Shown here: positions 7,601-28,600 of the stretch, piece by piece
Layout of the letters: each line of letters starts with the position of its first letter
Numbering within the stretch: the stretch's first letter is position 1
Assembly (NCBI RefSeq): GCF_031769215.1
Contig: NW_026782259.1
Location: forward strand, 434,001 to 498,000
Source: Ylistrum balloti
Lineage: Eukaryota
Length of the DNA: 64,000 nucleotides
Direction of reading: 5' to 3'
The notes under the pieces: model-generated
What the model saw: only the letters and a program-made list of their open reading frames with translations
Told to the model about the DNA's origin: nothing
Database searches by the model: none
Made by a program: the position numbers and the translations under genes

Positions 7601-10600
7601 TATAAGGTAGTTTACTCACCAGATCGTGTCTGCCTCTGTGTGTAGATACTGGACATAAGGCAGTCTATGAATGTCAGTTGACCAGCAGGAGGTAGTGAAG
7701 GCCATCCCCATGTGAAGTGTAGGTACAGTCACTCCTAGTAACATATGACAGTGGCTACTATTACATTGCAGCTTTAATCATACTAACAAAACAGTTTGTT
7801 TCGTTGAGATAGTTTTCCAGTTTTTATTCCTTAAAACTTCTTAAACAAGAGATCCCAAACGGATCTTGGTGCCCACCATTGTTTGATCTTTATTTGCTCT
7901 TTGAACGCTTGATTTTTTCCCTTTTTTTCTTATTTCTTCACTGTTTTTGCTCTTAATGATAAGAAATTTGAACATTCATTTGCAGAAGTAGCAATGATAA
8001 TATTTTCCTGCTAAATCCAAAATGGTCGCCTGGAAGACATTTTGTTTTTTTCCTGATCAGTCAAGAAATCAAATTGGCATAAGTAGAGACCAAAGGGAAC
8101 ATACGTATGAAATTTGAGAGAGATCCATTTAGTACTTCTTAAGAAAAAGAGATTGAGGAGAAATCTAAGATGGCTGTCTGTCAGCCATTTCGTTTTTCTG
8201 ATCAGACCTAAAATCAAATGGACACAACTGAGACCAAGGGGAACTTACATATGAAATCTGAGAGAGATCCATCAAGTACTTTTCAAGAAATAGCGATATC
8301 AAACTTCACTGAAAAAATCAAAGACGGTCATTTCTCAGCCATTTTGTTTCTCTGATCTGTTCAAAAATCTTACAGGTACAACTAAAAGCCAGGGGGAACC
8401 TATATGTGAAATTTGAGAAAGATCCATCCAGTACACCTCAAGAAATAACAATAACAAACATTGTTTGCAGACAGAGGGATAACAGACCACGGATGTAGGG
8501 CAATTTGAACAGCCTACCATCTGATGATGGTGAGCTTAAAATAATGGATTTTCCTATTATTAGGTAATACAAATTACAAAACAATTACATTTATATGTAT
8601 TCATACAAAATAACTAGAGCACAGAATGTGTACAGACACCTACCAGACACATGTCCAAGATAACGCAGCAGAGAGCCAGGACTGTGGGGGAGGTTGTTGA
8701 GATTCCATGGATGGCTGAATTGAGAACAGAATCATTCTTAAATTTTCATTCTAGTCAATTATTGCTTGATTCTTCTAACTGTATTCCTCCCATGTTGCAG
8801 GATAAGTCACCCTATAATTGTACTTACACCCTCTTACCCAGTAGTAGTGATCCCCATCCCATCCCTTGTAAATATCCCCCCTTCTTTTTTACCTGTATTT
8901 TAATTCCATATCTATACCTCTAATAGTGGCCCCAACTCCTACATGTAGAAGTCACATATTCCTCTCCACCTTTAGTTAACTCTGCAACTTTTATCCATAT
9001 TAATAGTGACACCACACCATTAATCTGTTCTTATAATCCCAGCCCCTTCATCTGTACTAGTAACCCCACCCGTTTAAGTGTGCTAGTGTCTTTGAACCCT
9101 TTACCTGTACTAGTGGCTCCACCCATTCACCTGTGCTATTGACCATGCAAACTCCCTCAGCTATACCAGTGACTCCATCCCCTTTACCCATACTAATAAC
9201 CCTTCCCCTTTACTTGAAGTGACCCTACCTCTTAATCTGTACAAGTGACCATATCCCCTTTACCTGTACTGTAGACCCTACCCCCTTAACTTGTACAAGT
9301 GACTATATCCCCTTTACCTGTACTGTAGACCCTACCCCCTTAACTTGTACAAGTGACTATATCCCCTTTACCTGTACTGTAGACCCTACCCCCTTAACTT
9401 GTACAGGTGACCTTTCCCCTTTACTGGTACCAATGACCCCACCTCTTAACATTTACAAGTGGTCCCATCACCTTTACCTGTACCAGAGACCCCATTACCT
9501 TTACCTGTACTAGTGGCTCCACCCATTCACCTGTGCTATTGACCATGCAAACTCCCTCAGCTATACCAGTGACTCCATCCCCTTTACCCATACTAATAAC
9601 CCTTCCCCTTTACTTGAAGTGACCCTACCTCTTAATCTGTACAAGTGACCATATCCCCTTTACCTGTACTGTAGACCCTACCCCCTTAACTTGTACAAGT
9701 GACTATATCCCCTTTACCTGTACTGTAGACCCTACCCCCTTAACTTGTACAAGTGACTATATCCCCTTTACCTGTACTGTAGACCCTACCCCCTTAACTT
9801 GTACAAGTGACTATATCCCCTTTACCTGTACTGTAGACCCTACCCCCTTAACTTGTACAGGTGACCTTTCCCCTTTACTGGTACCAATGACCCCACCTCT
9901 TAACATTTACAAGTGGTCCCATCACCTTTACCTGTACCAGAGACCCCATTACCTTTACCTGTACTAGAGACCCATCACCTTTACCATTACAAGAGACCCA
10001 TCACCTTTACCATTACAAGAGACCCCACGCCCTTTACCATTACAAGAGACCCATCACCTTTACCATTACAAGAGACCCTTCACCTTTACCATTACAAGAG
10101 ACCCATCACCTTTACCATTACAAGAGACCCATCACCTTTACCATTACAAGAGACCCCACCCCCTTTACCATTTCAAGAGACCCACCCCCTTTACCATTAC
10201 AAGAGACCCATCACCTTTACCATTACAAGAGACCCCACCCCCTTTACCATTACAAGAGACCCCACCCCCTTTACCATTACAAGAGACCCACCCCCTTACC
10301 AGTACTTTTGATACTGACCCTTTAACCTGTAGGAGGTACCTTACCTGCAGTGGTGATTATCCTTTTTGGAAGAGAATGTGTTACAGCTGTGAGCCTGAGT
10401 ATCTATATGACCACCATGTACAACAACATGGGATTTCCTGCCTTTCACTATATTCCAGTACTCTTTCTGAAATTCAATATAAGACTATCATTGACTGTAG
10501 CTGATGATGAACAAGAAAGTTCAAATTGCAAGTCCCATCACAAAATGGTAAAAAAATTAACACTATATATAAAAAATCCTTAACAGCATGTTTGTACTGC

Positions 10601-13600
10601 AACAAAGCCAAAAGTTAATGTTCTGTAAATTTTCAAAGTCATTTTTTAAAAACTTTAAATCATTACGTGTTTCATGAACATTTCCATCTGTGGGAGTAGT
10701 ATATCACAGTGTATGCACAAGCAAATGTAGTCTATGAAGTTGTTCTCCATCAACTCTGATATCTTCCTGGTAGAGATTAAAACAAATGCCAGCAAAGATT
10801 TTGGACAGTAGAACAGAAATGTCCTATGGTTGATAAATTTTAATATTCTCCTGCATTGACCTTGAACACAAACCTCTACATTGTCAGTGGAGTTGGAAGA
10901 AGAGTCTCGCAGCCATGCCCCACCGATGTTCCGTGCAGCTCTGTTGAACATTACCAAGGACATGTTTTTTCCCTGTAGAGGAAGGAGGGCATCATTGTGA
11001 CATCAGCAGAGAGAAACTGAACAATTTACATACAATTACGTTTGCTTACACTGCCTCATGTTTAACACACATGTTTGAGATCTAGACCAATGTCAGTAAT
11101 ACACAAAGTGTAAAGTATATTGTTTCGGAGTAAAAACAGTTTTTGGAAGATAAAAACATTTTCCTGACTACTTCAGTCCTTGTCTAGATAAAGCTACTCT
11201 TACTGAGACTTCTTTGGATTTGGTTAAGAAATTAAAAAAAAACAACATCCAGTTCTTCTCCAGAAATTGCAATAATAAATCGTTACTATCAAAATCCAAG
11301 AGGGCCATCGATCAGACATATTACTTTTCAGGTCAGTCCCAAAATCAGCCAATGCACAACTAGCAACCAAGAGGAACCTGCATATGGGGATGATTGAAGG
11401 CTAAAAACATATCAAATGAGAAGAGTTGTAGTGGCCTTGACCCCGATTCAGTTACCTTCATCACACACTCCTCTTCCGTCTTATCTTTTCTAGTTTTCCT
11501 CATTTCTGTTACCTCCTCCTCAAGTTTACGCTTCTTGTCTGCAGACAACATATCATAAGAGACAAGGAACTTACAGTAAGCATCGTAAAGTTTAGTTCCC
11601 CTATCTTGTGCCTGTAACAATATAAACATTAGAGATGTGTTAAATCAGGAGTTTACAGTAATGATCGTAAATCTCCTATCCTTTTTCTATAAGAAGAAAA
11701 CATTGATTCATGCTATATCAGGAATTTATAGTAAGCTTCTAAAGTTAAATTCCCCCAACCTGTGCCTATAAGAATGAAACAATGCTTCATGAATTTATAG
11801 TAAGCTTCAAAAGTTAAATTCCCCAAATCTGTGCCTATAAGAATGAAACAATGCTTTATGAATTTATAGTAAGCTTCAAAAGTTAAATTCCCCAAACCTG
11901 TGCCTATAAGAATGAAACAATGCTTCATGAATTTATAGTAAGCTTCAAAAGTTAAATTCCCCAAACCTGTGCCTATAAGAATGAAACAATGCTTCATGAA
12001 TTTATAGTAAGCTTCAAAAGTTAAATTCCCCAAACCTGTGCCTATAAGAATGAAACAATGCTTCAGGAACTTACAGTAAGCTTTAAAAGTTTAATTCCCC
12101 TATCTTTCGCCTACAGCATTCACACATCTAAAGCACACCAGGAATAGATGATTGAGTCACCGGACTAAGTAATTTTATGTCATACATAAGTAGTCTGACA
12201 TGCAGTATTACAATCCAGACAGCTTAATCAAATGTATTAAAGATGTCGACCTATGAAACAGAAATGAACCATTGGTTTTTGAGAGAACTTATAGTCTCTT
12301 ACTGATTTAGGAATTCCTATGATGTCTGCAACTTTCAATAATTTCTTCTTTTCAATAACACTCTGCATGCCTCCCAAGTGTTGAATAACAGCTGAAAATT
12401 TACAGATGTCCACCTCTACACCTCCAATCTGAACAGAGCAAACATAGCATACAATGAAATTTTCCCGTCCATGAAAACCATAACTATTGAGGGAGATTTC
12501 TTTTGAAACAATTGCAATTTCTCAAAGTCAACATTTTCACTTTCTTTTTTCCATCATTTTTCATCATAATAACAGTTAAATTGCTGAAAACTGTACTTGT
12601 TTGAACATTTTTTCACAAATTTCATGTTAATGCCGTTATCATTTTAATACACATTGCAGTACTATCAGAGATTGTTACATGGATTTTTTGTCCTTAAGGG
12701 GTTCCATACTTTCACTTTATTTGATAATGCCATGTATAATTGACACTAGATAATTTATTCTCCATAGTTTCACATGGTGATTTGTTGATTGAAGGCTTGG
12801 TAATGTTTCTTTAATTGAATGACTTACGACTGGAAATGGCTCTGACACACCATGAGAGTCAAGATGCTTCTGTATAGCTTTAAGTTGACACACATTGGGT
12901 CCAAACCTGTAGACAGACAACAAATCCACTTGTCTTCAGTTCTATATTTTTTAAACATAGCAGGCTTATTCTGATTAAGTGCCTTTTATAACAAAAGAAG
13001 TGCCTTGAATGCTGAATTGGGTTCATTAAGAACTTCGATCAGGGTATGACTTTTCTGTTTATTGATACTGTGAATGAAATCTTAAATCGAAAGACTGAGA
13101 TTTCCTTGCTAGACAAGCTTGGCTGAGCTCCCTTCCTTAGGTAAAATATGTAACTTGTCACAGCCAATCAGTTGACAGTAAGGGGTGACAGATAGTTATT
13201 TCTATATGTGTCTTTCTCCCAATATCCTATACATACACATCATACAAGTGGTTGATGGAGAGAGGTGTTTATATACATACCTATCATACAACTTGTGAAT
13301 ATACTGCTTTTGTGTGGTGAACCGCAATTCTTCACTGATCTTACTATCGGACTGAAAAAGATGAAATTTTTTATTAAGCACAAGACTGCATAACTACATA
13401 CCAGTAAAACATTAGAATTGTTTTCAAATAATGTTTCACTATTTAATAAACTAAGACACTGTGAAACGCTGTAGACCGGACACACACAAACACTGTAGAT
13501 CAGACACACGAAAACACTGTAAATCAGACACACGCAAACACTGTAGACCTGACACACACAAACACTGTAGATCAGACACACACAAACACTGTAGATCAGA

Positions 13601-16600
13601 CACACACGAACACTGTAGACCTGACACACACAAACACTGTAGACCTGACACACACAAACACTGTAGATCAGACACACACAAACACTGTAGACCTGACACA
13701 CACAAACACTGTAGACCTGACACACACAAACACTGTAGACCTGACACACACAAACACTGTAGATCAGACACACACAAACACTGTAGACCTGACACACACA
13801 AACACTGTAGACCTGACACACACAAACACTGTAGATCAGACACACACAAACACTGTAGACCTGACACACACAAACACTGTAGATCAGACACACACAAACA
13901 CTGTAGACCTGACACACACAAACACTGTAGATCAGACACACACAAACACTGTAGATCAGACACACACGAACACTGTAGACCTGACACACACAAACACTGT
14001 AGATCAGACACACACAAACACTGTAGACCAGACACACACAAACACTGTAGACCAGACACACACAAACAATGTAGACCTGACACACACAAACACTGTAGAC
14101 CTGACACACACAAACACTGTAGACCTGACACACACAAACACTGTAGATCAGACACACGCAAACACTGTAGACCTGACACACGCAAACACTGTAGATCAGA
14201 CACACACAAACACTGTAGACCTGACACACACAAACACTGTAGATCAGACACACACAAACACTGTAGACCTGACACACACAAACACTGTAGATCAGACACA
14301 CACAAACACTGTAGACCTGACACACACAAACACTGTAGACCTGACACACACAAACACTGTAGATCAGACACACACAAACACTGTAGACCTGACACACACA
14401 AACACTGTAGACCAGACACAAACACTGTAGACCTGACACACACAAACACTGTAGACCAGACACAAACAAACACTGTAGACCTGACACACACAAACACTGT
14501 AGACCTGACACACACAAACACTGTAGACCTGACACACACAAACACTGTAGACCTGACACACACAAACACTGTAGACCAGACACACACAAACACTGTAGAT
14601 CAGACAAACACTGTAGACCTGACACACACAAACACTGTAGACCTGACACACACAAACACTGTAGACCTGACACACACAAACACTGTAGATCAGACACACG
14701 CAAACACTGTAGTCCTGAAACTTGGAAACACTGTAGTAGACCTGAAAGTTGGAAACACTGTAGGCCTAAAACATGGAAACACAGTGGACCTCACAGCTGA
14801 TTCACGATACATCACATGTATAGAACACTAGGATTATATAGATAGATGCAAATACTCCTCAATACCAGGTAGACATATCATTCAAATTGAATAAAAGCAG
14901 CTACAATGAAGCATCACCAGCTTATGTCTGATCCATTGATAATTAATAAGCTGCAAAGTAAACTTTACAAATTTTATTGTATCATTACATCCTCATATTA
15001 GGGAGTTATACAGCTCCAAACTGAGGGTACTTAGTTGAAATCGATCAGAAAAACTGTATTTTGTAAAGATGATGAACACAGTCTAATAGCAACTATACAA
15101 TACACACACCTTCCAACTTTGTGGTGGGACGATCTTGCACATTCCATACGGTTCTGCTACCATTGTGACAGACTGTATGTACTTGATAGGATCAGAGAAT
15201 TCTTCCTCATTAGGGTAAAATGTAGGAGCCTCAACAAGTCTGGCAGGCTGCCCTGGCCCAGGAAAAGGCTCTTGTTTCACTTCCTTGTCAACCGACAGGT
15301 TGTCTTTCAGCCTTTTCTTCACTGTAGTGTCCATAAAAATAACAATTGTAGGTTCTATAATACCATTATAAATTAACTATTGTGGTTGTGTGAATTTATC
15401 AATGTGCTAAAGTGATAATGCGCTAAAATTGGATTGCACCACATTAGATATGTTTGCAGTAAAACTGTAGATTTGAATTATAAATATATAAATATATATA
15501 AAATATAAACCTTATTTATTTTACAACAATTGCGAAACAAGTTATGTCAACTTATACTAATCACTCTTGTTGGCCCGGATGTAAGCGCGCGAGGGGTCTT
15601 ATTGTGGGAGGAAACCGGAGTACCCGGGGAAAACCCACGTGGTCGGGTAGGTGACCCCTTACCTTTTCACGTCCGTTCCGGGAATCGAACCCCGGTCGGC
15701 TAGGTGAAAGGCGAGTGCGTTACCACTGCGCCACCCGACCACCCTAGATTTGAATTGACAGTCATACATGTTTTATATAACTTATGGAACTTCAACTTTC
15801 AATTTCTACATATTTTGTTCACTTTAAAACATTATTAGCTAAAATAAGATACTGTACAAGTTTTCTTAGAAACATTTTTGCCAGATATAGTACAAATGAG
15901 ATATTAAAGCTCATATGATGAAGACTGATATTTCTATAAATCATAAATACTTCTTCATACTGGTCTTACCTGAGGGTTTCCGCTTTTGTTTCACAGAATC
16001 AGACCCTGAATTTCGAGATCCTTGCTTGACTGAATCTGACATCAAAATGTCTGTTTTAGAGTCCTTTTCTCCTTTCACTAAAAGTTTTCTCCGTTTCTCA
16101 GTTGGAGATAATGATTCAAATTTCTTTTTCTGATCTATTTTATATTTCACATCATCCTTTATATTTTTCTGTTTGATTTGAGATCGTTTCTTGCTGGATT
16201 CAATAACTCCTTTATTGTTCCCAGCAGTAGCTGGACTGACGGCTGGGATAGTAGACTCCTCCACACACCCCTCTGCTCTCAACACAATTCCTGATCGTGT
16301 ATGAACCCCAGATGAACTATCACATTCTACTTGAGTATTCTTTTGTCCTAAAACTTTTGTATTCTCTGTCTTCTCTGTTTTCACTTTTCTCTTCACTTGA
16401 CGTAATTGAATTTTTCCATGAGTTTTGGCCTTTTGAGATTTTTTTTCCACCTTCTGCAGTCTAGTTTTCTTTAAAGGTGCACTACTGGAAGGGCCTTCAG
16501 AGTCTAGCTCTGATTTACGTTTCCTATTTGTATACGATTCTGGGGATTGTTTAAACACAAAGCTGACCTCATGATCAAATTCATCATCTTCAAGGTAACA

Positions 16601-19600
16601 ACTGTTCCAACGTAGTTTTGCTTTTCTCTGAGGAAGTCTGTGTGCAATAAATTTAGTAGCTGGTTTAAATTTCTTCTTTTTCTTTACAATATTAGCGTTA
16701 CTGAGTTGCCTCCCCTTTTGAATGATTTTTTCTGGAGTTGGTTTTGTTGTTCGTCTGTTCTTTTCTCGTTGTCCTTTAGTTTTCATCTGTTGTCAAAATA
16801 AAACATTGAATAGAATAATTTCACCATAAGGATTACATATATGTAATGGTCTTCACTTATAGCAAAGTTAAGAAGAGTGTACTTTTTATAACATAATTGG
16901 AACAAATCAAATTTTAAATAATTTTCTAAATTATATATGCAACAACATTGAAGTTTCTAAAACAGACATTTGAATTTAATCAATTTCACTGGACAAATTT
17001 CTTTACAATTTTTCTGAATGCAACATATTATGTGTTTTATGTTATTTCTCATAGATAATAAGTATATTAGTAACATATCAAACAGTAAACAAAAAGACTT
17101 TTGTTTGTAAAATTAACATTGAAATAAACAAAAGAAACCTGGTTGGTAAAGTTAACAGTAGCGTTAATGATAAAATAAATTTGAAATTTCAAACCATGCA
17201 ATAAACATAGAGAAAGTTTGTGAGACATGCGAAGGCAATCCTCTCAAGTTTTATATAACAGGGTATCCCAAGAGATGAGTTAAGGGGAATTCCCCAGGTT
17301 TGGTCAATGAAAAATAAGACCATATATACCTGGTAGCCTTTTAGTTTATCAGTAGGTAATACCTTGACTTTAAACTGTAAAAAAATTGTTAGTTCTACAA
17401 AACAAAGTAACTTGTTTTAACATGTAACAAATTTAATATACAAATATGTTTTGCATGCCAACTCAACTGAACTCAAGATGAAATATAACCCACTTACGTT
17501 TTGCGTGGAGCTCTTTTTTAAACAATATCATTATCTCAGCTTCGTAAGTTAACAATAGACAAATCCTTCAGAACTGGCTGGACAAGTCTGGCATACCGCT
17601 CATCATTGGTTACAAAATAATTCTCAACAATACTTCAATTATCATGAACAATACAAGAAATAATCAGGTGTCTTCGCTTGCAAATGAAGTTGTAAGAAGT
17701 AAAAACATTGTCTTTTTATTTGGCAGTTGCAGCTATGGACAACATGCTTGCTGTGTTGTTTAAAACCTGTTGCTAAAGGCAACATGTATGTTGTGTTGTT
17801 TGACAGTTGTTGCCAAAGGTAATACACCTGTTTTCTTGTGTGTGATAGTTGTAGCTGTAAACAACATGTCTGTTGTGTGTGATAGTTGTAGCTGTAAACA
17901 ACATGTTTGTTGTGTTGTTTAAAACCTGTTGCTAAAGGCAACACATCTGTCATGGTTTTTGACAGTTTTAGCTGTAAACAACATGTCTATTGAGTTGTTT
18001 GACAGTTGTAGCTGTAAACAACATGTCTGTTGAGTTGTATGACAGTTGTAGCTGTAAACAACATGTCTGTTGAGTTGTATGACAGTTGTAGCTGTAAACA
18101 ACATGTCTTTTGTGTTGTTTGACAGTTGTAGCTGTAAACAACATGTCTGTTGAGTTGTATGACAGTTGTAGCTGTAAACAACATGTCTTTTGAATTGTTT
18201 GACAGTTGTAGCTGTAAACAACATGTCTGTTGAGTTGTATGACAGTTGTAGCTGTAAACAACATGGCTGTTGAGTTGTATGACAGTTGTAGCTGTAAACA
18301 ACATGTCTGTTGTGTTGTTTGACAGTTGTTGCTGTAAACAACATGTCTGTTGTATTGTTTGACAGTTGTTGCTGTAAATAACATGTCTGTTGAGTTGTAT
18401 GACAGTTGTAGCTGTAAATAACATGTCTGTTGTGTTGTTTGACAGTTGTAGCTGTAAACAACATGTCTGTTGAGTTGTATGACAGTTGTAGCTGTAAACA
18501 ACATGTCTGTTGAGTTGTATGACAGTTGTAGCTGTAAACAACATGTCTGTTGAGTTGCATGACAGTTGTAGCTGTAAACAACATGTCTGTTGAGTTGTAT
18601 GACAGTTGTAGCTGTAAATAACATGTCTGTTGTGTTGTTTGACAGTTGTAGCTGTAAACAACATGTCTGTTGTGTTGTTTGACAGTTGTTGCTGTTAACA
18701 ACATGTCTGTTGTGTTGTTTGACAGTTGTAGCAGTAAACAACATCAATGTTGTGTTGTCTGACAGTTGTAGCTGTAAACAACATGTCTGTTGAGTTGTAT
18801 GACAGTTGTAGCTGTAAATAACATGTCTGTTGTGTTGTTTGACAGTTGTAGCTGTTAACAACAAGTCTGTTGTGTTGTTTGACAGTTGTAGCTGTTAACA
18901 ACAAGTCTGTTGTGTTGTTTGACAGTTGTAGCAGTAAACACCACCATCAATGTTGTGTTGTCTGACAGTTGTAGCTGTAAACAACATGTCTATTGAGATG
19001 TATGACAGTTGTAGCTGTAAACAACATGTCTGTTGTGTTGTTTGACAGTTGTAGCAGTAAACAACATCAATGTTGTGTTGTATGACAGTTGTAGCTGTAG
19101 ACAACATCAATGTTGTGTTGTATGACAGTTGTAGCTGTAGACAACATCAATGTTGTGTTGTCTGACAATTGTAGCTTACTTTCCTTACAAAATTAAATAA
19201 ATCTCATCGAGTAAATTACATCTAATCTGACAAGAACATTTTTCTCTTCACACAATACTGCTAAAAACATTCATCTGATCTCAACATTTATTACAAAAAC
19301 TAAATTCCAAAAGTGGTAAGAAAATGAAAAGTATCTATACAAAGTTTACCCTTTTTATAACTAAGAAGATTGGGCAACAAGAAAAAAATATCATAGTTAA
19401 TTCCTAGGAAAAAGAGAAATACTGGCGTTAAGTAACAATCATGGGATTGGAGAGTCTGTACATCAAAGCACTTACAGTAACATAACAACACTATACACTG
19501 TATATACCCCTGGTATCTAGATATATCAGAAAATAAAAAGATTTCAAACCTAAATATTTGTTAGATAACAGTGAAGAGCCACTTGGGCTGGTAAACTGAT

Positions 19601-22600
19601 AGAGGGGGAAAGTATTAGATAAACTAACACATACAGTATAACAGAGACATACAATTGTAGGGGGATTATTAGGTAAACTCACACACATGATGATAGTGAC
19701 ACTACAACTGTAGGGGGGATTATTAGGTAAACTAACACCCATGATGATAGTGACACTACAACTGTAGGGGGATTATTAGATAAACTCACACACATGATGA
19801 TAGTGACACTACAACTGTAGGGGGATTATTAGGTAAACTAACACACATGATGATAGTGACACTACAACTGTAGGGGGATTATTAGGTAAACTCACACACA
19901 TGATGATAGTGACACTACAACTGTAGGAGGATTATTAGGTAAACTCACACACATGATGATAGTGACACTACAACTGTAGGGGGATTATTAGGTAAACTCA
20001 CACACATGATGATAGTGACACTACAACTGTAGGGGGGGATTATTAGGTAAACTAACACCCATGATGATAGTGACACTACAACTGTAGGGGGGATTATTAG
20101 GTAAACTAACACACATGATGATAGTGACACTACAACTGTAGGGGGGGATTATTAGGTAAACTAACACACATGATGATAGTGACACTACAACTGTAGGGGG
20201 GATTATTAGGTAAACTAACACACATGATGATAGTGACACTACAACTGTAGGGGGATTATTAGGTAAACTAACACACATGATGATAGTGACACTACAACTG
20301 TAGGGGGGGATTATTAGGTAAACTCACACACATGATAATAGTAACACTACAACTGTAGGGGGATTATTAGGTAAACTAACACACATGATAATAGTAACAC
20401 TACAACTGTAGGGGGATTATTAGGTAAACTAACACACATGATAATAGTAACACTACAACTGTAGGGGGATTATTAGGTAAACTAACACACATGATAATAG
20501 TAACACTACAACTGTAGGGGGATTATTAGGTAAACTAACACACATGATGATAGTAACACTACAACTGTAGGGGGGAATATTAGGTAAACTAACACACATG
20601 ATAATAGTGACACTACAACTGTAGGGGGATTATTAGGTAAACTAACACACATGATAATAGTAACACTACAACTGTAGGGGGGATTATTAGGTAAACTAAC
20701 ACACATGATGATAGTGACACTGCAACTGTAGGGGGATTATTAGGTAAACTAACACACATGATAATAGTAACACTACAACTGTAGGGGGATTATTAGGTAA
20801 ACTAACACACATGATGATAGTAACACTACAACTGTAGGGGGATTATTAGGTAAACTCACACACATGGTGATAGTGACACTACAACTGTAGGGGGATTATT
20901 AGGTAAACTAACACACATGATAATAGTAACACTACAACTGTAGGGGGGATTATTAGGTAAACTCACACACATGATGATAGTGACACTACAACTGTAGGGG
21001 GATTATTAGATAAACTCACACACATAATGATAGTGACACTACAACTGTAGGAGGATTATTAGGTAAACTAACACACATGATGATTGTAACACTACAACTG
21101 TAGGGGGATTATCAGGTAAACTCACACACATGGTGATAGTGACACTACAACTGTAGGGGGATTATTAGGTAAACTAACACACATGATGATAGTAACACTA
21201 CAACTGTAGGGGGAATATTAGATAAACTCACACACATGATGATAGTAACACTACAACTGTAGGGGGATTATTAGGTAAACTCACACACATGGTGATAGTG
21301 ACACTACAACTGTAGGGGGATTATTAGGTAAACTAACACACATGGTGATAGTGACACTACAACTGTAGGAGGATTATTAGGTAAACTAACACACATGGTG
21401 ATAGTAACACTACAACTGTAGGGGGATTATTAGATAAACTCACACACATGATGATAGTGACACTACAACTGTAGGGGGATTATTAGGTAAACTAACACAC
21501 ATGATGATAGTAACACTACAACTGTAGGGGGATTATTAGGTAAACTCACACACATGGTGATAGTGACACTACAACTGTAGGGGGATTATTAGGTAAACTC
21601 ACACACATGATGATAGTGACACTACAACTGTAGGAGGATTATTAGGTAAACTAACACACATGGTGATAGTAACACTACAACTGTAGGGGGATTATTAGAT
21701 AAACTCACACACATGATGATAGTGACACTACAACTGTAGGGGGATTATTAGGTAAACTAACACACATGATGATAGTAACACTACAACTGTAGGGGGATTA
21801 TTAGGTAAACTCACACACATGGTGATAGTGACACTACAACTGTAGGGGGATTATTAGGTAAACTCACACACATGATGATAGTGACACTACAACTGTAGGG
21901 GGATTATTAGATAAACTCACACACATGATGATAGTGACACTACAACTGTAGGGGGATTATTAGGTAAACTCACACACATGATGATAGTGACACTACAACT
22001 GTAGGGGGGGGATTATTAGGTAAACTCACACACATGATGATAGTAACACTAGAACTGGAGGGGGATTATTAATTATAACATGCTATCAAAGCACATGTAT
22101 TGTCAGTGGCATGTCTTATCACAAGGGTAGTAACAATACAGGCAGACACTTCCTCATAGTTCTAATAATACCAACACTCACATTTGATTTACATTAGAAA
22201 GAGCAAAAGAATAAACATACAACCCATAGTACATTAATCACATGATGTGTTTGGTCTAATGAATGTTAGACAACATTATGTAATTTTGTTATAAATTCTG
22301 TAATATTACCATGTTTTGATCAGAGCAATTACTCTGCATCTTAGGGACCCTGTCAGATAAAATTAAAATCTAATATATATCCTATGTAAGCTGCTATATT
22401 TAATCTTGATAACAAAGTTTCATTGATGTATCTAAAATGGTTACAAGCTTTATGACAAGAAAATGAGAAATCAACAAAGAAAAATAACTTTCTTCAACTG
22501 ACTGTATAGCATCAACAAGAGACCCAAAGACCCTAACATGTCACCTGAGTTCAATAACTTGTTCTTGTGTCATATGTCATATGAAAATCTTGTAAACAAA

Positions 22601-25600
22601 GTAAGATAACTTTTACTACATGTTGCATATAATGCAAGTGTAAACTGTACAAAATTAACTGCCATCCCCTGTTTAGGATTCTAAGTAAACTTAAATTACT
22701 TTGGGGTCATCAAATCAACTGGTATGTCTTAAAACAGTTGAGAGTGTATCAAAAGTACTACAGAATAGTTATAATCCTACAAACCATGCCAAAAAATCAG
22801 CTATCAGCAAATAGAAAAAGGTACAAAACAGCTATAAGTCAAATACAACCATGCAAATTAGCAATAACCTTATTCTTAATCCTTTCCAAATAGTGCAACA
22901 TAGTGGACATCACAACAATAATGACAAGAGAATATAAAGGTCACATGATGCAGTACAAGTAAGTTACAAGACTGAAACCAGTCCAATGGACCTAAACCAC
23001 CACTGTAGTTCTAATGTTTAGGATTTTCATTTCCGCATGCAATTGATTGGTGATAATGTAAATAAAGCACAGTTAGGGGGAATAACTCTAATAGTATTGT
23101 TAAGGGTTCAAATACTAATATGGTATCAGTTTGATTTTGATAAAGCATGACTAACAGCTACCTGTCCCTTATTTTAATCCTGGAAACAATCCAAATTGTA
23201 ACTCTATCTTTAAGCAAGGGTTCATACAATACCTCAGACCCTTTCTATCCACAAAAAATATTTGTAACAAATTCAAATTAGACTTGTTTTTGTTCATCCC
23301 TTCAGCGCCTTGGAATAGGGACAATATAGCTCAACCTTTAAAAGGTCCTGCACATACCAGTGAAATCAGTTATGGTGTGTTAGACACAGTCACAGTTACA
23401 TAGCACATCATGTGCAAAAAATAGTAACAGACAAATGGGATCTGACACTGTAAAGATGTTTTTATGTCTTTACAGTACGTCTCAGGTGATCCTCAAATAC
23501 TGTAAACATAACACAGATAAACACTATATGGAGCAAAAGCAAAACAACCATATAACCAAACATTACGTAAAAGTACATAAGCATACAAAATGAAAAGCAC
23601 TTTCAACTATAGCACAAGAAAATTCAAAGTTAGAATCAAAACAAAATATGCATTGCAGTCGGGTACCTTGTAAATAACTTAACACAAAGTTTCAATCCAA
23701 TCCATCAGAGGGTGGGAGGGGCAGGGTAGAGTGTTACACTGTATACACAAAGTAAGTCTGTTTAGTGAGGTAACTCTAAAACAGAGGGTGGGAGGGGCAG
23801 GGTAGAGTGTTACACAGTATACACAAAGTAAATCTGTTTAGTGAGGTATCTCTCTAAAACAGAGGGTGGGAGGGGCAGGGTAGAGTGTTACACTGTATAC
23901 ACAAAGTAAGTTTGTTTAGTGAGGTATCTCTCTAAAACAGAGGGTGGGAGGGTAGAGTGTTACCCTGTATACACAAAGTAAGTCTGTTTAGTGAGGTATC
24001 TCTCTAAAACAGAGGGTGGGAGGGTAGAGTGTTACACTGTATACACAAAGTAAGTTTGTTTAGTGAGGTATCTCTCTAAAACAGAAGGTGGGAGGGTAGA
24101 GTGTTACCCTGTATACACAAAGTTAGTCTGTTTAGTGAGGTATCTCTCTATAACAGAGGGTGGGAGGGGCAGGGTAGAGTGTTTTACCAGGAGGTGACCT
24201 GTTATCCTGCTGTATTTCACTATCACTTGCTTTAACAGAGGTAGCATCAAGAGACTTCATCTCCAGTTTGCGTTCTCGAATGGACGTCAGAACAGAGTAA
24301 GGTGGAGCAGGATGAGGCAAAATGGAGGCACTTGCCCTGATTGGACAATTAGCCACCTTTGCATGAACAACAGACTTGGCAAGAGGTGGATATTCATGGT
24401 CTAGTGAAGATGTGGGTGAAGCTATAAGGTGACATGCAGGTGGATCTATGACATGTGACATGGGTGGATCTATACGAACAATTTTGGATGAGGAAGAAGC
24501 TTCCGTGTGAGGTATTGGTGGAGATATTTGAGATCGAGGATTAAGTGCTGACACAGGAGGTAGGAGAAATGAAACAAAAGCTTTTTTTCTAGCTCTTGGC
24601 TTTGAAGAAGGTGTTGAAGTTTTACACTTATACCTTGCAAGAATTCCCTTGTGTTTTGACAGGGTTTTAGGGGAGGGTGACGTCAATGTTGGGGATTCTA
24701 AACTATCTATGAATCCACTGTCGTCAATATTGACAGCACAACCTACAGATAAGGGTGTGGTCGATTTTACAGTTTGCTGAGGCAAAGTTTTTGTAATCTT
24801 ATCTACAGGGTGATGGTCTTCTTCAACACATTTTAAGACTGTGTCTTCAACACATCTTGAGACTTTGTCTTCAACACATCTTGAGACCGTGTCTTCAACA
24901 CATTTTAAAGCTGTGTCTTCAACACATCTTGAGACCGTGTCTTCAACACATCTTGAGACCGTGTCTTCAACACATCTTGAGACTTTGTCAGACTCAATTT
25001 GTTGACTGGTAATTTTTGGTGGTGTTGTTTTGTATCTCTTTCCAACAGTGAGTTCTGAATAAGATGTGCTTGTATCAGATAAAACAGACTCTAGGGGAAA
25101 TGTCCATTGAGAAGGGCTGGAAAATATTGGGTCTTCTGACTCATTGGTTAATATTTCTCCAACATCAACATTAGGGGAATTAGCAGGTGCAGTGTCTGGA
25201 TGGCAGGAAATAACAGGAGGTGGGGCATTGTTTGTAACCTCAATATCTAAGTAACGAGATTGGCACATTTTCATCATAGACTCATGTTCCATACTGAATC
25301 TATCTTTATTCAAAGAATTGAATTGTGAGAAAAGGGGGACAAATACTTCTGGAGGTTTCTCAAAGGCAACGGCAACACTTGTATCTGGTAACTGGGAAGA
25401 TCTTAAAGTATCATTCCCAGACAAAGAAAGGGATTGTGTACAGCAGGATATGACATCACAGCAAACAACATCTTGCAGGGACACTGTTTGGATAGGACAG
25501 GAAATTTCTTCCTCATTGGATATGAAATCACAGGAAACAGAATCTTGAAAAGACAAAGTTTGTGTAGGGCAGGCTATAACATCACCCTCAGTAGAAACCA

Positions 25601-28600
25601 AAGGGATTTGTGTTTGACAGGAAAAGACATCACTGGAAATGACATTTTCAGTGGAAAGAGAATGCATTTGTGTTGGACAGGAAATGACATTCTCAGTAGA
25701 AAGAGAAGGCATTTGTGTTGGACAGGAAATGACATTCTCAGTAGAAAGAGAAGGCATTTGTGTTGGACAGGAAATGACATTCTCAGTAGAAAGAGAAGGC
25801 ATTTGTGTTGGACAGGAAATGACATTCTCAGTAGAAAGAGAAGGCATTTGTGTTGGACAGGAAATGACATTCTCACTAGAAAGAGAAGGCATTTGTGTTG
25901 GACAGGAAATGACATTCTCAGTAGAAAGAGAAGGCATTTGTGTTGGACAGGAAATGACATTCTCAGTAGAAAGAGAAGGCATTTGTGTTGGACAGGAAAT
26001 GACATTCTCAGTAGAAAGAGAAGGCATTTGTGTTGGACAGGAAATGACATTCTCAGTAGAAAGAGAAGGCATTTGTGTTGGACAGGAAATGATGTCACTG
26101 GAAATGGTATCCTCAGTGGAAACGGAAGGGATTTCAGAAGGACAGGATATGACATCATAGGAGATGGCATCCTCAGTAGATCTAGAAGTGGTTTGAGTAG
26201 GAGAGTGGGTGGGGCCCTCACTGGATGAAAGGGTTTGGGTAGAGCAGGGAACATCATTCTCTGTAGATCCAGAAATGGTTTGAGTAGGAGAGTGGATGGG
26301 TTCCTCACTGGATGTAAGGGTTTGGGTAGACCAGGGAACATCATTCTTTGTAGATACAGAAGTGGCCTTAGTAGGAGAGTGGATGGGGCCCTCACTGGAT
26401 GTAAGGGTTTGGGTAAAGCAGGGAACATCATTCTTTGTAGATACAGAAGTGGCCTGAGTAGGAGAGTGGATGGGGCCCTCACTGGATGTAAGGGTTTTGG
26501 TAGACCAGGGAACATCATTCTTTGTAGATACAGAAGTGGCCTGAGTAGGGGAGTTGATGGGGCCCTCACTGGATGTAAGGGTTTTGGTAGAGCAGGGAAC
26601 ATCATTCTCTGTAGATACAGAAGTGGTTTGAGTAGGGGAGTGGATGGGGCCCTCACTGGATGTAAGGGTTTGGGTAGAGCAGGGAATATCATTCTCTGTA
26701 GATCCAGAAGTGGCTTGAAAAGGGGAGTTGATGGGGCCCTCGCTGGATGTAAGGGTTTGGGTAGAGCAGGGAATATCATTCTTTGTAGATACAGAAGTGG
26801 CCTGAGTAGGAGAGTGGATGGGGCCCTCACTGGATGTAAGGGTTTGGGTAGAGCAGGGAATATCATTCTTTGTAGATACAGAAGTGGCCTGAGTAGGGGA
26901 GTGGATGGGGCCCTCACTGGATGTAAGGGTTTGGGTAGAGCAGGGAACATCATTCTCTGTAGATCTAGACGTGGTTTGAGTAGGGGAGTGGATGGGGCCC
27001 TCACTGGATGTATGGGTTTGAGTAGACCTAGTCTCAGTAGATTTAGATGATGTTTGTAATGAGAAAGAAACATCATGAGGGGTGGATACAGTAGAGGTTT
27101 TGATAGGGAAGGAAATATCATCCAAGGTATAAGATGAAGGGGTTTGGGTTATACTGGAACAAGATTGATCTATAAGATCACACTTCAGGCATGCAGGTAG
27201 CACTACACCAGAGAAACCCTGCTTTGGTGACATATCATTATTATCTGAACAGGCAGTACTAGGGTTAGAAGTGCTACACACAGGAGTAGAGTTAACAGTG
27301 ATATCAGCAGTACATATAGGCATTGCATTGGCTATATAGGGTAGATCTCCTACACTACTAGATCTACTAACCCCTTCACCATCTCTCGATTCTTCACCAC
27401 AGCTGTTAGTACCAGTCACTACACTACTCGAGTCCCAAACATCAGTTACCTTGGTCTGTCGTTGATTTCCTGGTTTGTCGTCCACTCCTGACTGATCTAT
27501 AAACAGTGACTTACGCCTGTTTTTTTGGTTTGGTGAAAGTTTTGAAGAGGTCAAAGTTGCAATGGCCTTTCTCTTGATACACAGACGCTCTGCATCAGTC
27601 ATCTTGCCAGGACTTGCTTTACCTCGTGTCCCCTTCACAGGGGAAGGTGTTCCATTTCTATAGGATCGAGTACACTTTGCAGGGGTGACTGCAGGTGATG
27701 CATTTCTTCTCTTCGAAGTTGCCCGTGACCTTTGACCTTGTCGGGTTGGAAAACTTGCCAATCCCCTGGCAGTCTCTGGAGTGCCTGCACATGCACGTGC
27801 AGCTTTCCTGCTTGGGGTGACACGACCACTTGGTGGCATAACCTGTCAAGGAGAAATTATCAAATTCAAATCTCCATACAGCATATCACAGAATCCATGA
27901 AATATCAAGCAGTACTCTATCCAAACTTTGCTGAAAGTAAAGAACATCTTTCATGTCCTAAAATATCTTGCATGAAAAAGTCACATTGCAAGCACAATAA
28001 CTACAGTAATTCCACTCTCCTTGTGAAAACCACAGTACAAGTTCATTTTAAATGATAAATTGTGAAGTTCTCAAGGTGGTATACAGTTTGAGGAACAAAC
28101 AATTAATTTCTCTCCCAGCTTCTAAAATATTTAGGCAAACTATTTGTCAAAAGATTATCTGACAGACAAAATCTAAAAGTTTCAAAGCTTTTAAGACAAG
28201 AATGTATAAGGTTTGATGGACATTTCTAAACTAACTAGAATTACAAGAAACAACTTGACAAGTTAAGGGAAATTAAGAACAGCCTGTAAATGTCATTAAA
28301 AACCTGGACATGTTAGGCAAAATGCCAACATAACATGACAAATGCAATGAGATTTCAGTATTATACACAGAATGAAAGCCAGTATGTACCAGTGGTGCTG
28401 GAGAGTCTGCCACATCATCGGGTACATTACTACAACTAGTACTGCTGGAAGAAGGAGAACTCTCACGCACAAAAGCTCGACCTCGATTAGGTGGTGTTGG
28501 TGGCAGGCTAGTGTCACCCTCGTCTCGGGAGAAATTGAAAAAGTCCAGGTGCGGAGGAAGGGCCTGTGTTCCTATCAACAATAACAATCAATAAGGTATC

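Follow-up and report, generated by a model that had tools for sequence, protein, structure and literature searches.

JARID2 and its exon 5 in the window

The window, a 64,000-nucleotide (nt) stretch from the saucer scallop Ylistrum balloti, carries on its minus strand the gene for JARID2 (protein Jumonji), a cofactor of the PRC2.2 form of Polycomb repressive complex 2 (PRC2) that links the reading of H2A ubiquitin, allosteric activation and chromatin targeting. The subject of this analysis is exon 5 of that gene, which holds two internal 5′ splice sites and an open reading frame (ORF) that continues past both of them to its own stop codon. The opening 157 residues of exon 5, used in a word search, were found at 100% identity in the RefSeq 'protein Jumonji-like isoform X2' (XP_060074204.1, 1328 amino acids, aa); isoform X1 (XP_060074203) has 1329 aa. 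XP_060074204.1 is encoded exactly by the window and was mapped exon by exon from 31386 to 4520 on the minus strand, taking in exons 1 to 5 (exon 5 in its short form), a basic exon, the JmjN exon and the remainder through the last exon. Its domains follow one another in the order JmjN (PF02375), ARID (PF01388) and JmjC (PF02373), as expected of a JARID2 orthologue. When residues 1–430 were compared with the PDB using phmmer, exons 1–4 were found to resemble the human JARID2 chains of the PRC2 cryo-electron microscopy entries 6WKR, 6C23, 7KSO and 8VNV (E-value 7e-11), in an alignment that takes in AQRKFAQ and KTEDFLTFLCLRG. Both AQRKFAQ, which surrounds the methylated lysine, and TEDFLTFLCLRG align to human JARID2, consistent with a retained N-terminal PRC2-interacting segment.

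All exons described here lie on the minus strand. The coding exon 4 (28390–28571, about residues 213–273 of XP_060074204.1) ends in phase 0 at the donor cca CTG|GTACAT, and exon 5 opens at the acceptor gacag|gtt atg cca with position 27842 in phase 0. From 27842 a giant ORF extends for 1236 codons to a TAA at 24134–24132. Within it the shortest form of exon 5 (27450–27842, 131 codons) ends at the phase-0 donor AAG|GTAACT, which obtained the top score among the 200 GT sites of the giant ORF under a crude 5′ splice-site matrix. The sequence-only reading had picked out this donor, which is real and the best GT available, and had missed a second conserved one, GGG|GTTAGT, also in phase 0, which ends the form of exon 5 that RefSeq uses in Y. 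balloti (27372–27842, 157 codons). In XP_060074204.1, exon 5 ends at 27372 and the protein reads ...SRDGEG|MKTKGQREKNRR...KQKRKPS|VKKRLKD, with the junction residues SRDGEG|MKTKGQ. Both donors are identical, together with their flanks, in a three-species alignment of Y. balloti, Mizuhopecten yessoensis and Pecten maximus. Beyond the second donor lies what we call the extension (24132–27371), which adds 1079 in-frame codons and the TAA and has orthologous ORFs in other scallops.

Downstream of the extension, the basic linker exon (15970–16786, 26% lysine plus arginine) goes from phase 0 to phase 1, with the borders acag|atg aaa at 16786 and tca g|gtaaga at 15970, and is present in every Jmj-containing model. 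The following exon (15110–15321) has a phase-1 acceptor at 15321, takes one carried-over base and encodes JmjN (Pfam E-value 9e-17). A candidate phase-1 donor, CTG|GTAAAA (24186–24190, last exon base 24188), lies near the end of the giant ORF in Y. balloti, and its position is not conserved. A splice from 24188 to 16786 would give g|at gaa aac taa, so that the earlier observation that the two exons in series run into an immediate stop was reproduced. This phase clash is not an assembly slip, because a genomic DNA run from the same species covers 24154–24849 in a contig with zero indels and bears out the assembly around 24188. On reading the junctions, the coordinates and phases given earlier for 28390, 27842, 24188, 16786, 15970 and 15321 all proved right, as did the predicted isoform lengths of about 1303, 1510 and 2118 aa, which are consistent with the 1328 aa of the RefSeq protein.

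The gene was compared among four scallops, Y. balloti, M. yessoensis (locus L001), P. maximus (L002) and Argopecten irradians (L003), and the order of exon 4, giant ORF, basic exon and JmjN exon is the same at all orthologous loci. Seven Jmj-containing RefSeq proteins from these four species were inspected directly, and all seven combine one of the two internal exon 5 donors with the basic exon. The GGG|GT donor is used by P. maximus X1 and X2 and by the single A. irradians model; the AAG|GTAAC donor is used by P. maximus X3 (1305 aa, ...QRQTK|KKAKIQ) and M. yessoensis X4 (1332 aa, ...RQRQTK|IKPRVQ). M. yessoensis X3 (1358 aa) most likely uses GGG|GT, since it is 26 residues longer than X4 and this excess equals the spacing between the two donors. 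The isoform with a short exon 5 and the basic exon, which the sequence-only reading had proposed, is found in RefSeq for all four scallops, in P. maximus X3 and M. yessoensis X4 on the very donor that had been named. Because every Jmj-containing model has it, the basic exon looks like the standard linker and not an alternative one, as far as the RefSeq models show.

A read-through product is also represented among these models. M. yessoensis XP_021342980.1 and XP_021342981.1 (1439 and 1436 aa) are titled 'flocculation protein FLO11-like isoform X1/X2', are numbered in a single X1–X4 series with the Jumonji-like X3 and X4, and begin at the same position as the 1358-aa X3, at the JARID2 start codon. 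They correspond to the isoform of about 1510 aa that the sequence-only reading had derived for Y. balloti. A protein carrying both the extension and the JmjN, ARID and JmjC domains was not found in the four scallops among proteins of 670–2131 aa.

Coding constraint on the exon 5 extension

Orthologous ORFs are present at L001 13555–17043 and L003 6311–10186, with the L002 counterpart in two pieces. The open frame measures 1171 codons in M. yessoensis, 1292 codons in A. irradians and 1237 in Y. balloti. Ratios of nonsynonymous to synonymous substitution rates (dN/dS) were 0.09–0.10 for the short exon 5, 0.19–0.23 for the basic exon and 0.31–0.42 for the non-repeat C-terminal 350–360 codons of the extension. 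The roughly 70 codons directly after the second internal donor gave 0.33–0.56, with all bootstrap upper bounds below 1. An alignment of the extension made from nucleotides alone, and free of protein-alignment bias for that reason, showed the lowest conservation at third codon positions, and 80 of its 82 pairwise gaps were multiples of three. The dN/dS values, the multiple-of-three gaps and the third-position pattern together indicate that the extension is real coding sequence, translated in the exon 5 frame and held under purifying selection. Within Y. balloti, the genomic DNA run differs from the window in the extension by a 6-nt in-frame deletion at 25365, with no frameshift or stop, and the 8 substitutions between run and window (5 nonsynonymous, 3 synonymous) are too few for inference.

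Constraint continues to the very end of the ORF. The stop lies at the aligned position in Y. balloti, M. yessoensis and P. maximus and two codons further in A. irradians, with GKTLYPAPPTLCYREIPH (Y. balloti), VRTLFPPPPTLCYRGIPQ (M. yessoensis), AITTLYPPPPALCFRDTP (P. maximus) and TTTLGPSPPVLCFRDIPQ (A. irradians) as the final 18 codons. Changes in these 18 codons, which follow the 24188 site, are mostly synonymous (dN/dS 0.08–0.53), and this constraint downstream of 24188 argues that a product reading through that site is under selection. The read-through isoform fits this pattern. The 24188 donor itself is absent from the aligned position in two relatives, which have tct gtc aga (M. yessoensis) and gcc atc aca (P. 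maximus) there. By the same crude splice-site matrix it ranks 19th of the 200 GTs in the ORF, and 16 phase-1 GTs score at least as high when 24188 itself is counted, leaving 15 others. A fit in phase at 24188 is unremarkable, no more than chance would give.

The short exon 5 is of basic composition (20% lysine plus arginine), and the extension falls into two parts. Serine/threonine-rich coding tandem repeats occupy 25635–27026, as 9.9 copies of an 87-nt unit (26168–27026) and 10.2 copies of a 45-nt unit (25635–26092), and the repeat units vary by species. The repeat part contains 37% serine plus threonine, 9% aspartate plus glutamate and 3% lysine plus arginine, and the earlier description of an acidic spacer was overstated. 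The non-repeat C-terminal part (24135–25397, 421 aa) is conserved in the multi-species alignment and carries the motifs KHKGIL, FVSFLLPP, RIDPP, CHLIASPTS and NCPI.A.ASILP.PAPPYSVL..IRE.KL, the conserved motif NCPIRASASILPHPAPPYSVLTSIRERKL and the tail TL.P.PP.LC[YF]R. No Pfam family was found in the extension, with sub-threshold noise only (Extensin_1, DUF7386). An AlphaFold model of its last 200 aa, made from a shallow alignment, gave a mean predicted local distance difference test score (pLDDT) of 53, a predicted template modelling score (pTM) of 0.15 and one helix, suggesting that the C-terminal part is probably disordered. For the C-terminus of the extension, a series of conserved linear motifs seems a better description than a domain.

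Between 26222 and 27005 a phase-1 donor-like CCA|GTGAGG recurs in nine copies of the 87-nt coding repeat and outscores the 24188 site, which gives the coding repeat many potential cryptic donors.

Probable read-through of exon 5 and other explanations

In a composite terminal exon the main isoform is spliced from an internal 5′ splice site, past which the ORF runs on in frame to a stop, and exon 5 of JARID2 has this arrangement. We consider it probable, at roughly 0.6, that the two internal donors compete with read-through into a terminal exon that yields a truncated JARID2, and that no linkers are swapped. In the standard mRNA, exon 4 would be joined to the short exon 5 (by donor 27372 or 27450), then to the basic exon at 16786–15970 and to JmjN at 15321, giving full JARID2 proteins of about 1303–1329 aa. 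The giant exon would be exon 5 read past both internal donors and not a separate cassette. When neither donor is used, translation would go on for 1079 codons through the serine/threonine-rich repeats and the C-terminal region to the stop at 24134–24132, and the transcript would presumably end in intron 5, making a composite alternative terminal exon of the kind seen in coding-region alternative polyadenylation. The resulting protein of about 1509 aa would keep the N-terminal part that resembles the PRC2-bound fragment of human JARID2 and be without the basic linker, JmjN, ARID and JmjC, and it could be a competing or differently targeted partner of PRC2. We infer the expression of the extension in Y. 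balloti, the end of its mRNA and the role of the truncated protein from comparative data and from the automated models of relatives.

Several observations weigh against read-through. The M. yessoensis X1 and X2 proteins, the only indirect support for polyadenylated transcripts with an end past the stop, are automated predictions, and a read-through model was not found in the RefSeq proteins of Y. balloti, P. maximus or A. irradians in the length range searched. A search for sequencing runs returned no RNA run for Y. balloti, the only run with sequence being the genomic DNA, whose contigs cross introns and show no splice joints; no transcript-derived fragments turned up when the opening 314 aa of the M. 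yessoensis exon 5 ORF were used in a word search. A canonical AATAAA or ATTAAA was not found within 950 nt downstream of the Y. balloti stop, the first ATTAAA standing at +956. AATAAA is seen only in M. yessoensis, where it overlaps the stop, and Y. balloti has ACTAAA at that place. The P. maximus ORF is divided into 352 and 823 codons by a single 1-nt frameshift in the repeats. All four scallops have a phase-1 GT no more than about 80 nt from the stop, and occasional splicing from near the stop onward to JmjN is possible.

At the P. maximus frameshift (L002 about 8150–8180) one base is missing by comparison with a sister repeat copy (tcttgttct vs tcttttct), and the two pieces lie in different frames. 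This may be an assembly error in the repeat, or a real lesion or frameshift allele. In Y. balloti, a 72-nt tandem repeat of 6.4 copies (23706–24183) consists of degenerate copies of the last codons of the ORF together with the stop and some 25 nt of flank, and every copy holds ACTAAA.

The sequence-only reading had taken the giant exon (27842–24188) and the basic exon to be mutually exclusive linkers before JmjN, with a splice from 24188 to 15321 giving a protein of about 2118 aa that retains every Jumonji domain. The phases do fit, in that the frame is kept with either exon alone and lost with both, and the phase-1 GT near the end of the ORF in all four species also speaks for such a splice. 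In three of them it falls at one aligned codon, as A|GTGATG in M. yessoensis, A|GTAAGG in P. maximus and A|GTAACA in A. irradians, and Y. balloti has its own, G|GTAAAA (24188), 7 codons downstream of that site. However, the stretch is rich in serine and AGT is one of the ordinary codons for it, the 24188 site is not conserved in position whereas the sites of the basic exon are, and the 15 other phase-1 GTs that score as well make the match ordinary. The 18 codons past 24188 and the stop are conserved as coding, every Jmj-containing model has the basic exon, none joins the giant ORF to JmjN, and the search of proteins up to 2131 aa gave no extension fused to the Jmj domains. We regard an exchange of linkers as unlikely, and the claim is not one to carry forward without RNA evidence. 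The underlying observation was accurate and its interpretation half right, with the short exon 5 and read-through forms supported and the linker exchange not.

Translation of the extension outside JARID2, from a nested gene or an internal-promoter transcript in intron 5 with its own start codon, would account for the downstream 823-codon ORF of P. maximus, which is open in a frame other than that of exon 5. It would also suit the pearl oyster Pinctada imbricata (L004), in which a 927-codon ORF stands apart from exon 5, ahead of the basic exon. Against this, three scallops have the ORF unbroken in the frame of exon 5, the stretch directly after the donors is constrained in the exon 5 frame, the M. 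yessoensis models begin at the JARID2 start codon, and the Pinctada ORF opens at a phase-0 acceptor (ctgcag|TGC) that matches the phase-0 donor of exon 5. We hold an origin outside JARID2 to be improbable, to the same degree as the exchange of linkers.

Both regions could also be constitutive if a small unseen exon of phase 1 to 0 lay between 24188 and 16786, a case that had been named in advance as one that would overturn the earlier proposal. From the stop to the basic exon the intron spans 7.3 kb and is largely minisatellite, which leaves room for a very short species-specific exon. All Jmj-containing RefSeq models of the four species nevertheless skip the extension, and no conserved coding block was found in the intron by blastn and tblastx against the three orthologous introns. 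The sole conserved block (17454–17557, minus strand) has 70–78% identity with P. maximus and A. irradians and cannot be a coding exon of phase 1 to 0, because every frame contains stops and its length varies. A bridging exon is thus very improbable, far more so than either of the other two alternatives.

The block at 17454–17557 ends in a perfect-looking donor GTAAGT (AAAAC|GTAAGTGGG at 17489–17502), about 700 nt upstream of the basic exon, and may serve an internal promoter as an alternative, non-coding 5′ exon, which would give an N-terminally truncated JARID2. Large intronic minisatellites occur in JARID2 at 13464–14736 (24 nt × 53), 17719–19176 (40 nt × 36) and 19613–22071 (53 nt × 46), and all three yield long spurious ORFs on both strands. 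The opposite-strand upstream neighbour of JARID2 is PIGT (Pfam Gpi16) in M. yessoensis (L001 1–6861) and in P. maximus (L002 1–53).

Returning to read-through of exon 5, the conserved and largely unannotated 1080-codon extension of JARID2 is the part of the finding that holds interest. About 1080 conserved codons are missed by three scallop annotations, that of Y. balloti included, and are misnamed 'flocculation protein FLO11-like' in the fourth. More tentatively, and with a little less than an even chance in our estimate, scallops and perhaps pteriomorph bivalves keep under purifying selection a Jumonji-less JARID2 in which the PRC2-docking N-terminus is followed by about 1100 aa of fast-evolving serine/threonine-rich repeats and conserved linear motifs. 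Two 5′ splice sites would compete with terminal read-through to produce it, and it could serve as a decoy or an alternative targeting subunit of PRC2.2, the pearl oyster unit being maybe a separate terminal exon. If this is true, a natural JARID2 with a head and a repeat tail would be a built-in experiment on the PRC2-binding head without the Jumonji/ARID body, and would show the choice between a splice site and a 3′ end tuning Polycomb function in molluscs.

The pearl oyster unit itself is an unannotated, repeat-rich ORF (L004 3770–6550), about 1.1 kb downstream of exon 5 and upstream of the basic exon. Exon 5 of P. imbricata ends at AAG|GTAAGT in phase 0, and the 927-codon ORF runs from its phase-0 acceptor to a TAA stop. 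No Pfam family was found in it, with sub-threshold NLRC4_HD2 only, and it has in common with the scallop C-terminus only a 28-residue motif, CPLRARTSVVPKPAPPLS vs NCPIRASASILPHPAPPYS (hhalign probability 39%, E-value 3e-4). Should the two be homologous, for which this motif is a weak indication, the alternative terminal unit would predate the split between scallops and pearl oysters and would have become fused to exon 5 in scallops. If it is a separate terminal exon in the pearl oyster, the intron would have been lost, or exonised, in the scallop lineage.

Comparison with known systems

The closest counterpart of the proposed Y. balloti isoform is the pair of M. yessoensis models, XP_021342980.1 and XP_021342981.1, which have JARID2 exons 1–4, the whole exon 5 ORF and the same tail and stop, and are 84% identical to the Y. 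balloti sequence across the 157 aa that open exon 5 and 48% identical across the C-terminal part outside the repeats. They differ in being automated models misnamed after their serine/threonine-rich repeats, whereas Y. balloti has no such annotated model, and in their repeat units, which are mostly of 15 aa in M. yessoensis and of 29 aa and 15 aa in Y. balloti.

A similar arrangement is known from another PRC2 accessory subunit, human PHF19 (hPCL3), of PRC2.1, whose short isoform hPCL3S is made when a 5′ splice site is read through and the transcript is polyadenylated at a site in the intron; N-terminal modules are kept, the C-terminal domains are lost and a specific tail is added at the C-terminus (PMC7105160). 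PHF19 differs from the scallop case in being another gene that acts in another PRC2 subcomplex, and its human tail is about 50 aa long compared to about 1080 aa in the scallop. The scallop isoform is also one whose expression we infer. The logic of a donor competing with a poly(A) site has a further precedent in the secreted and membrane forms of immunoglobulin mu, in which a poly(A) site and the internal 5′ splice site upstream of it, both in one exon/intron unit, compete and the outcome sets the C-terminus. We propose the same for scallop JARID2, with a hypothetical poly(A) site. For JARID2 itself, mammalian forms are known, as Delta-N JARID2, that part the PRC2-binding N-terminus from the Jumonji/ARID part. 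The mammalian form is without the N-terminus, and the proposed scallop form would be its reverse, with the N-terminus kept and the Jumonji/ARID part lost.

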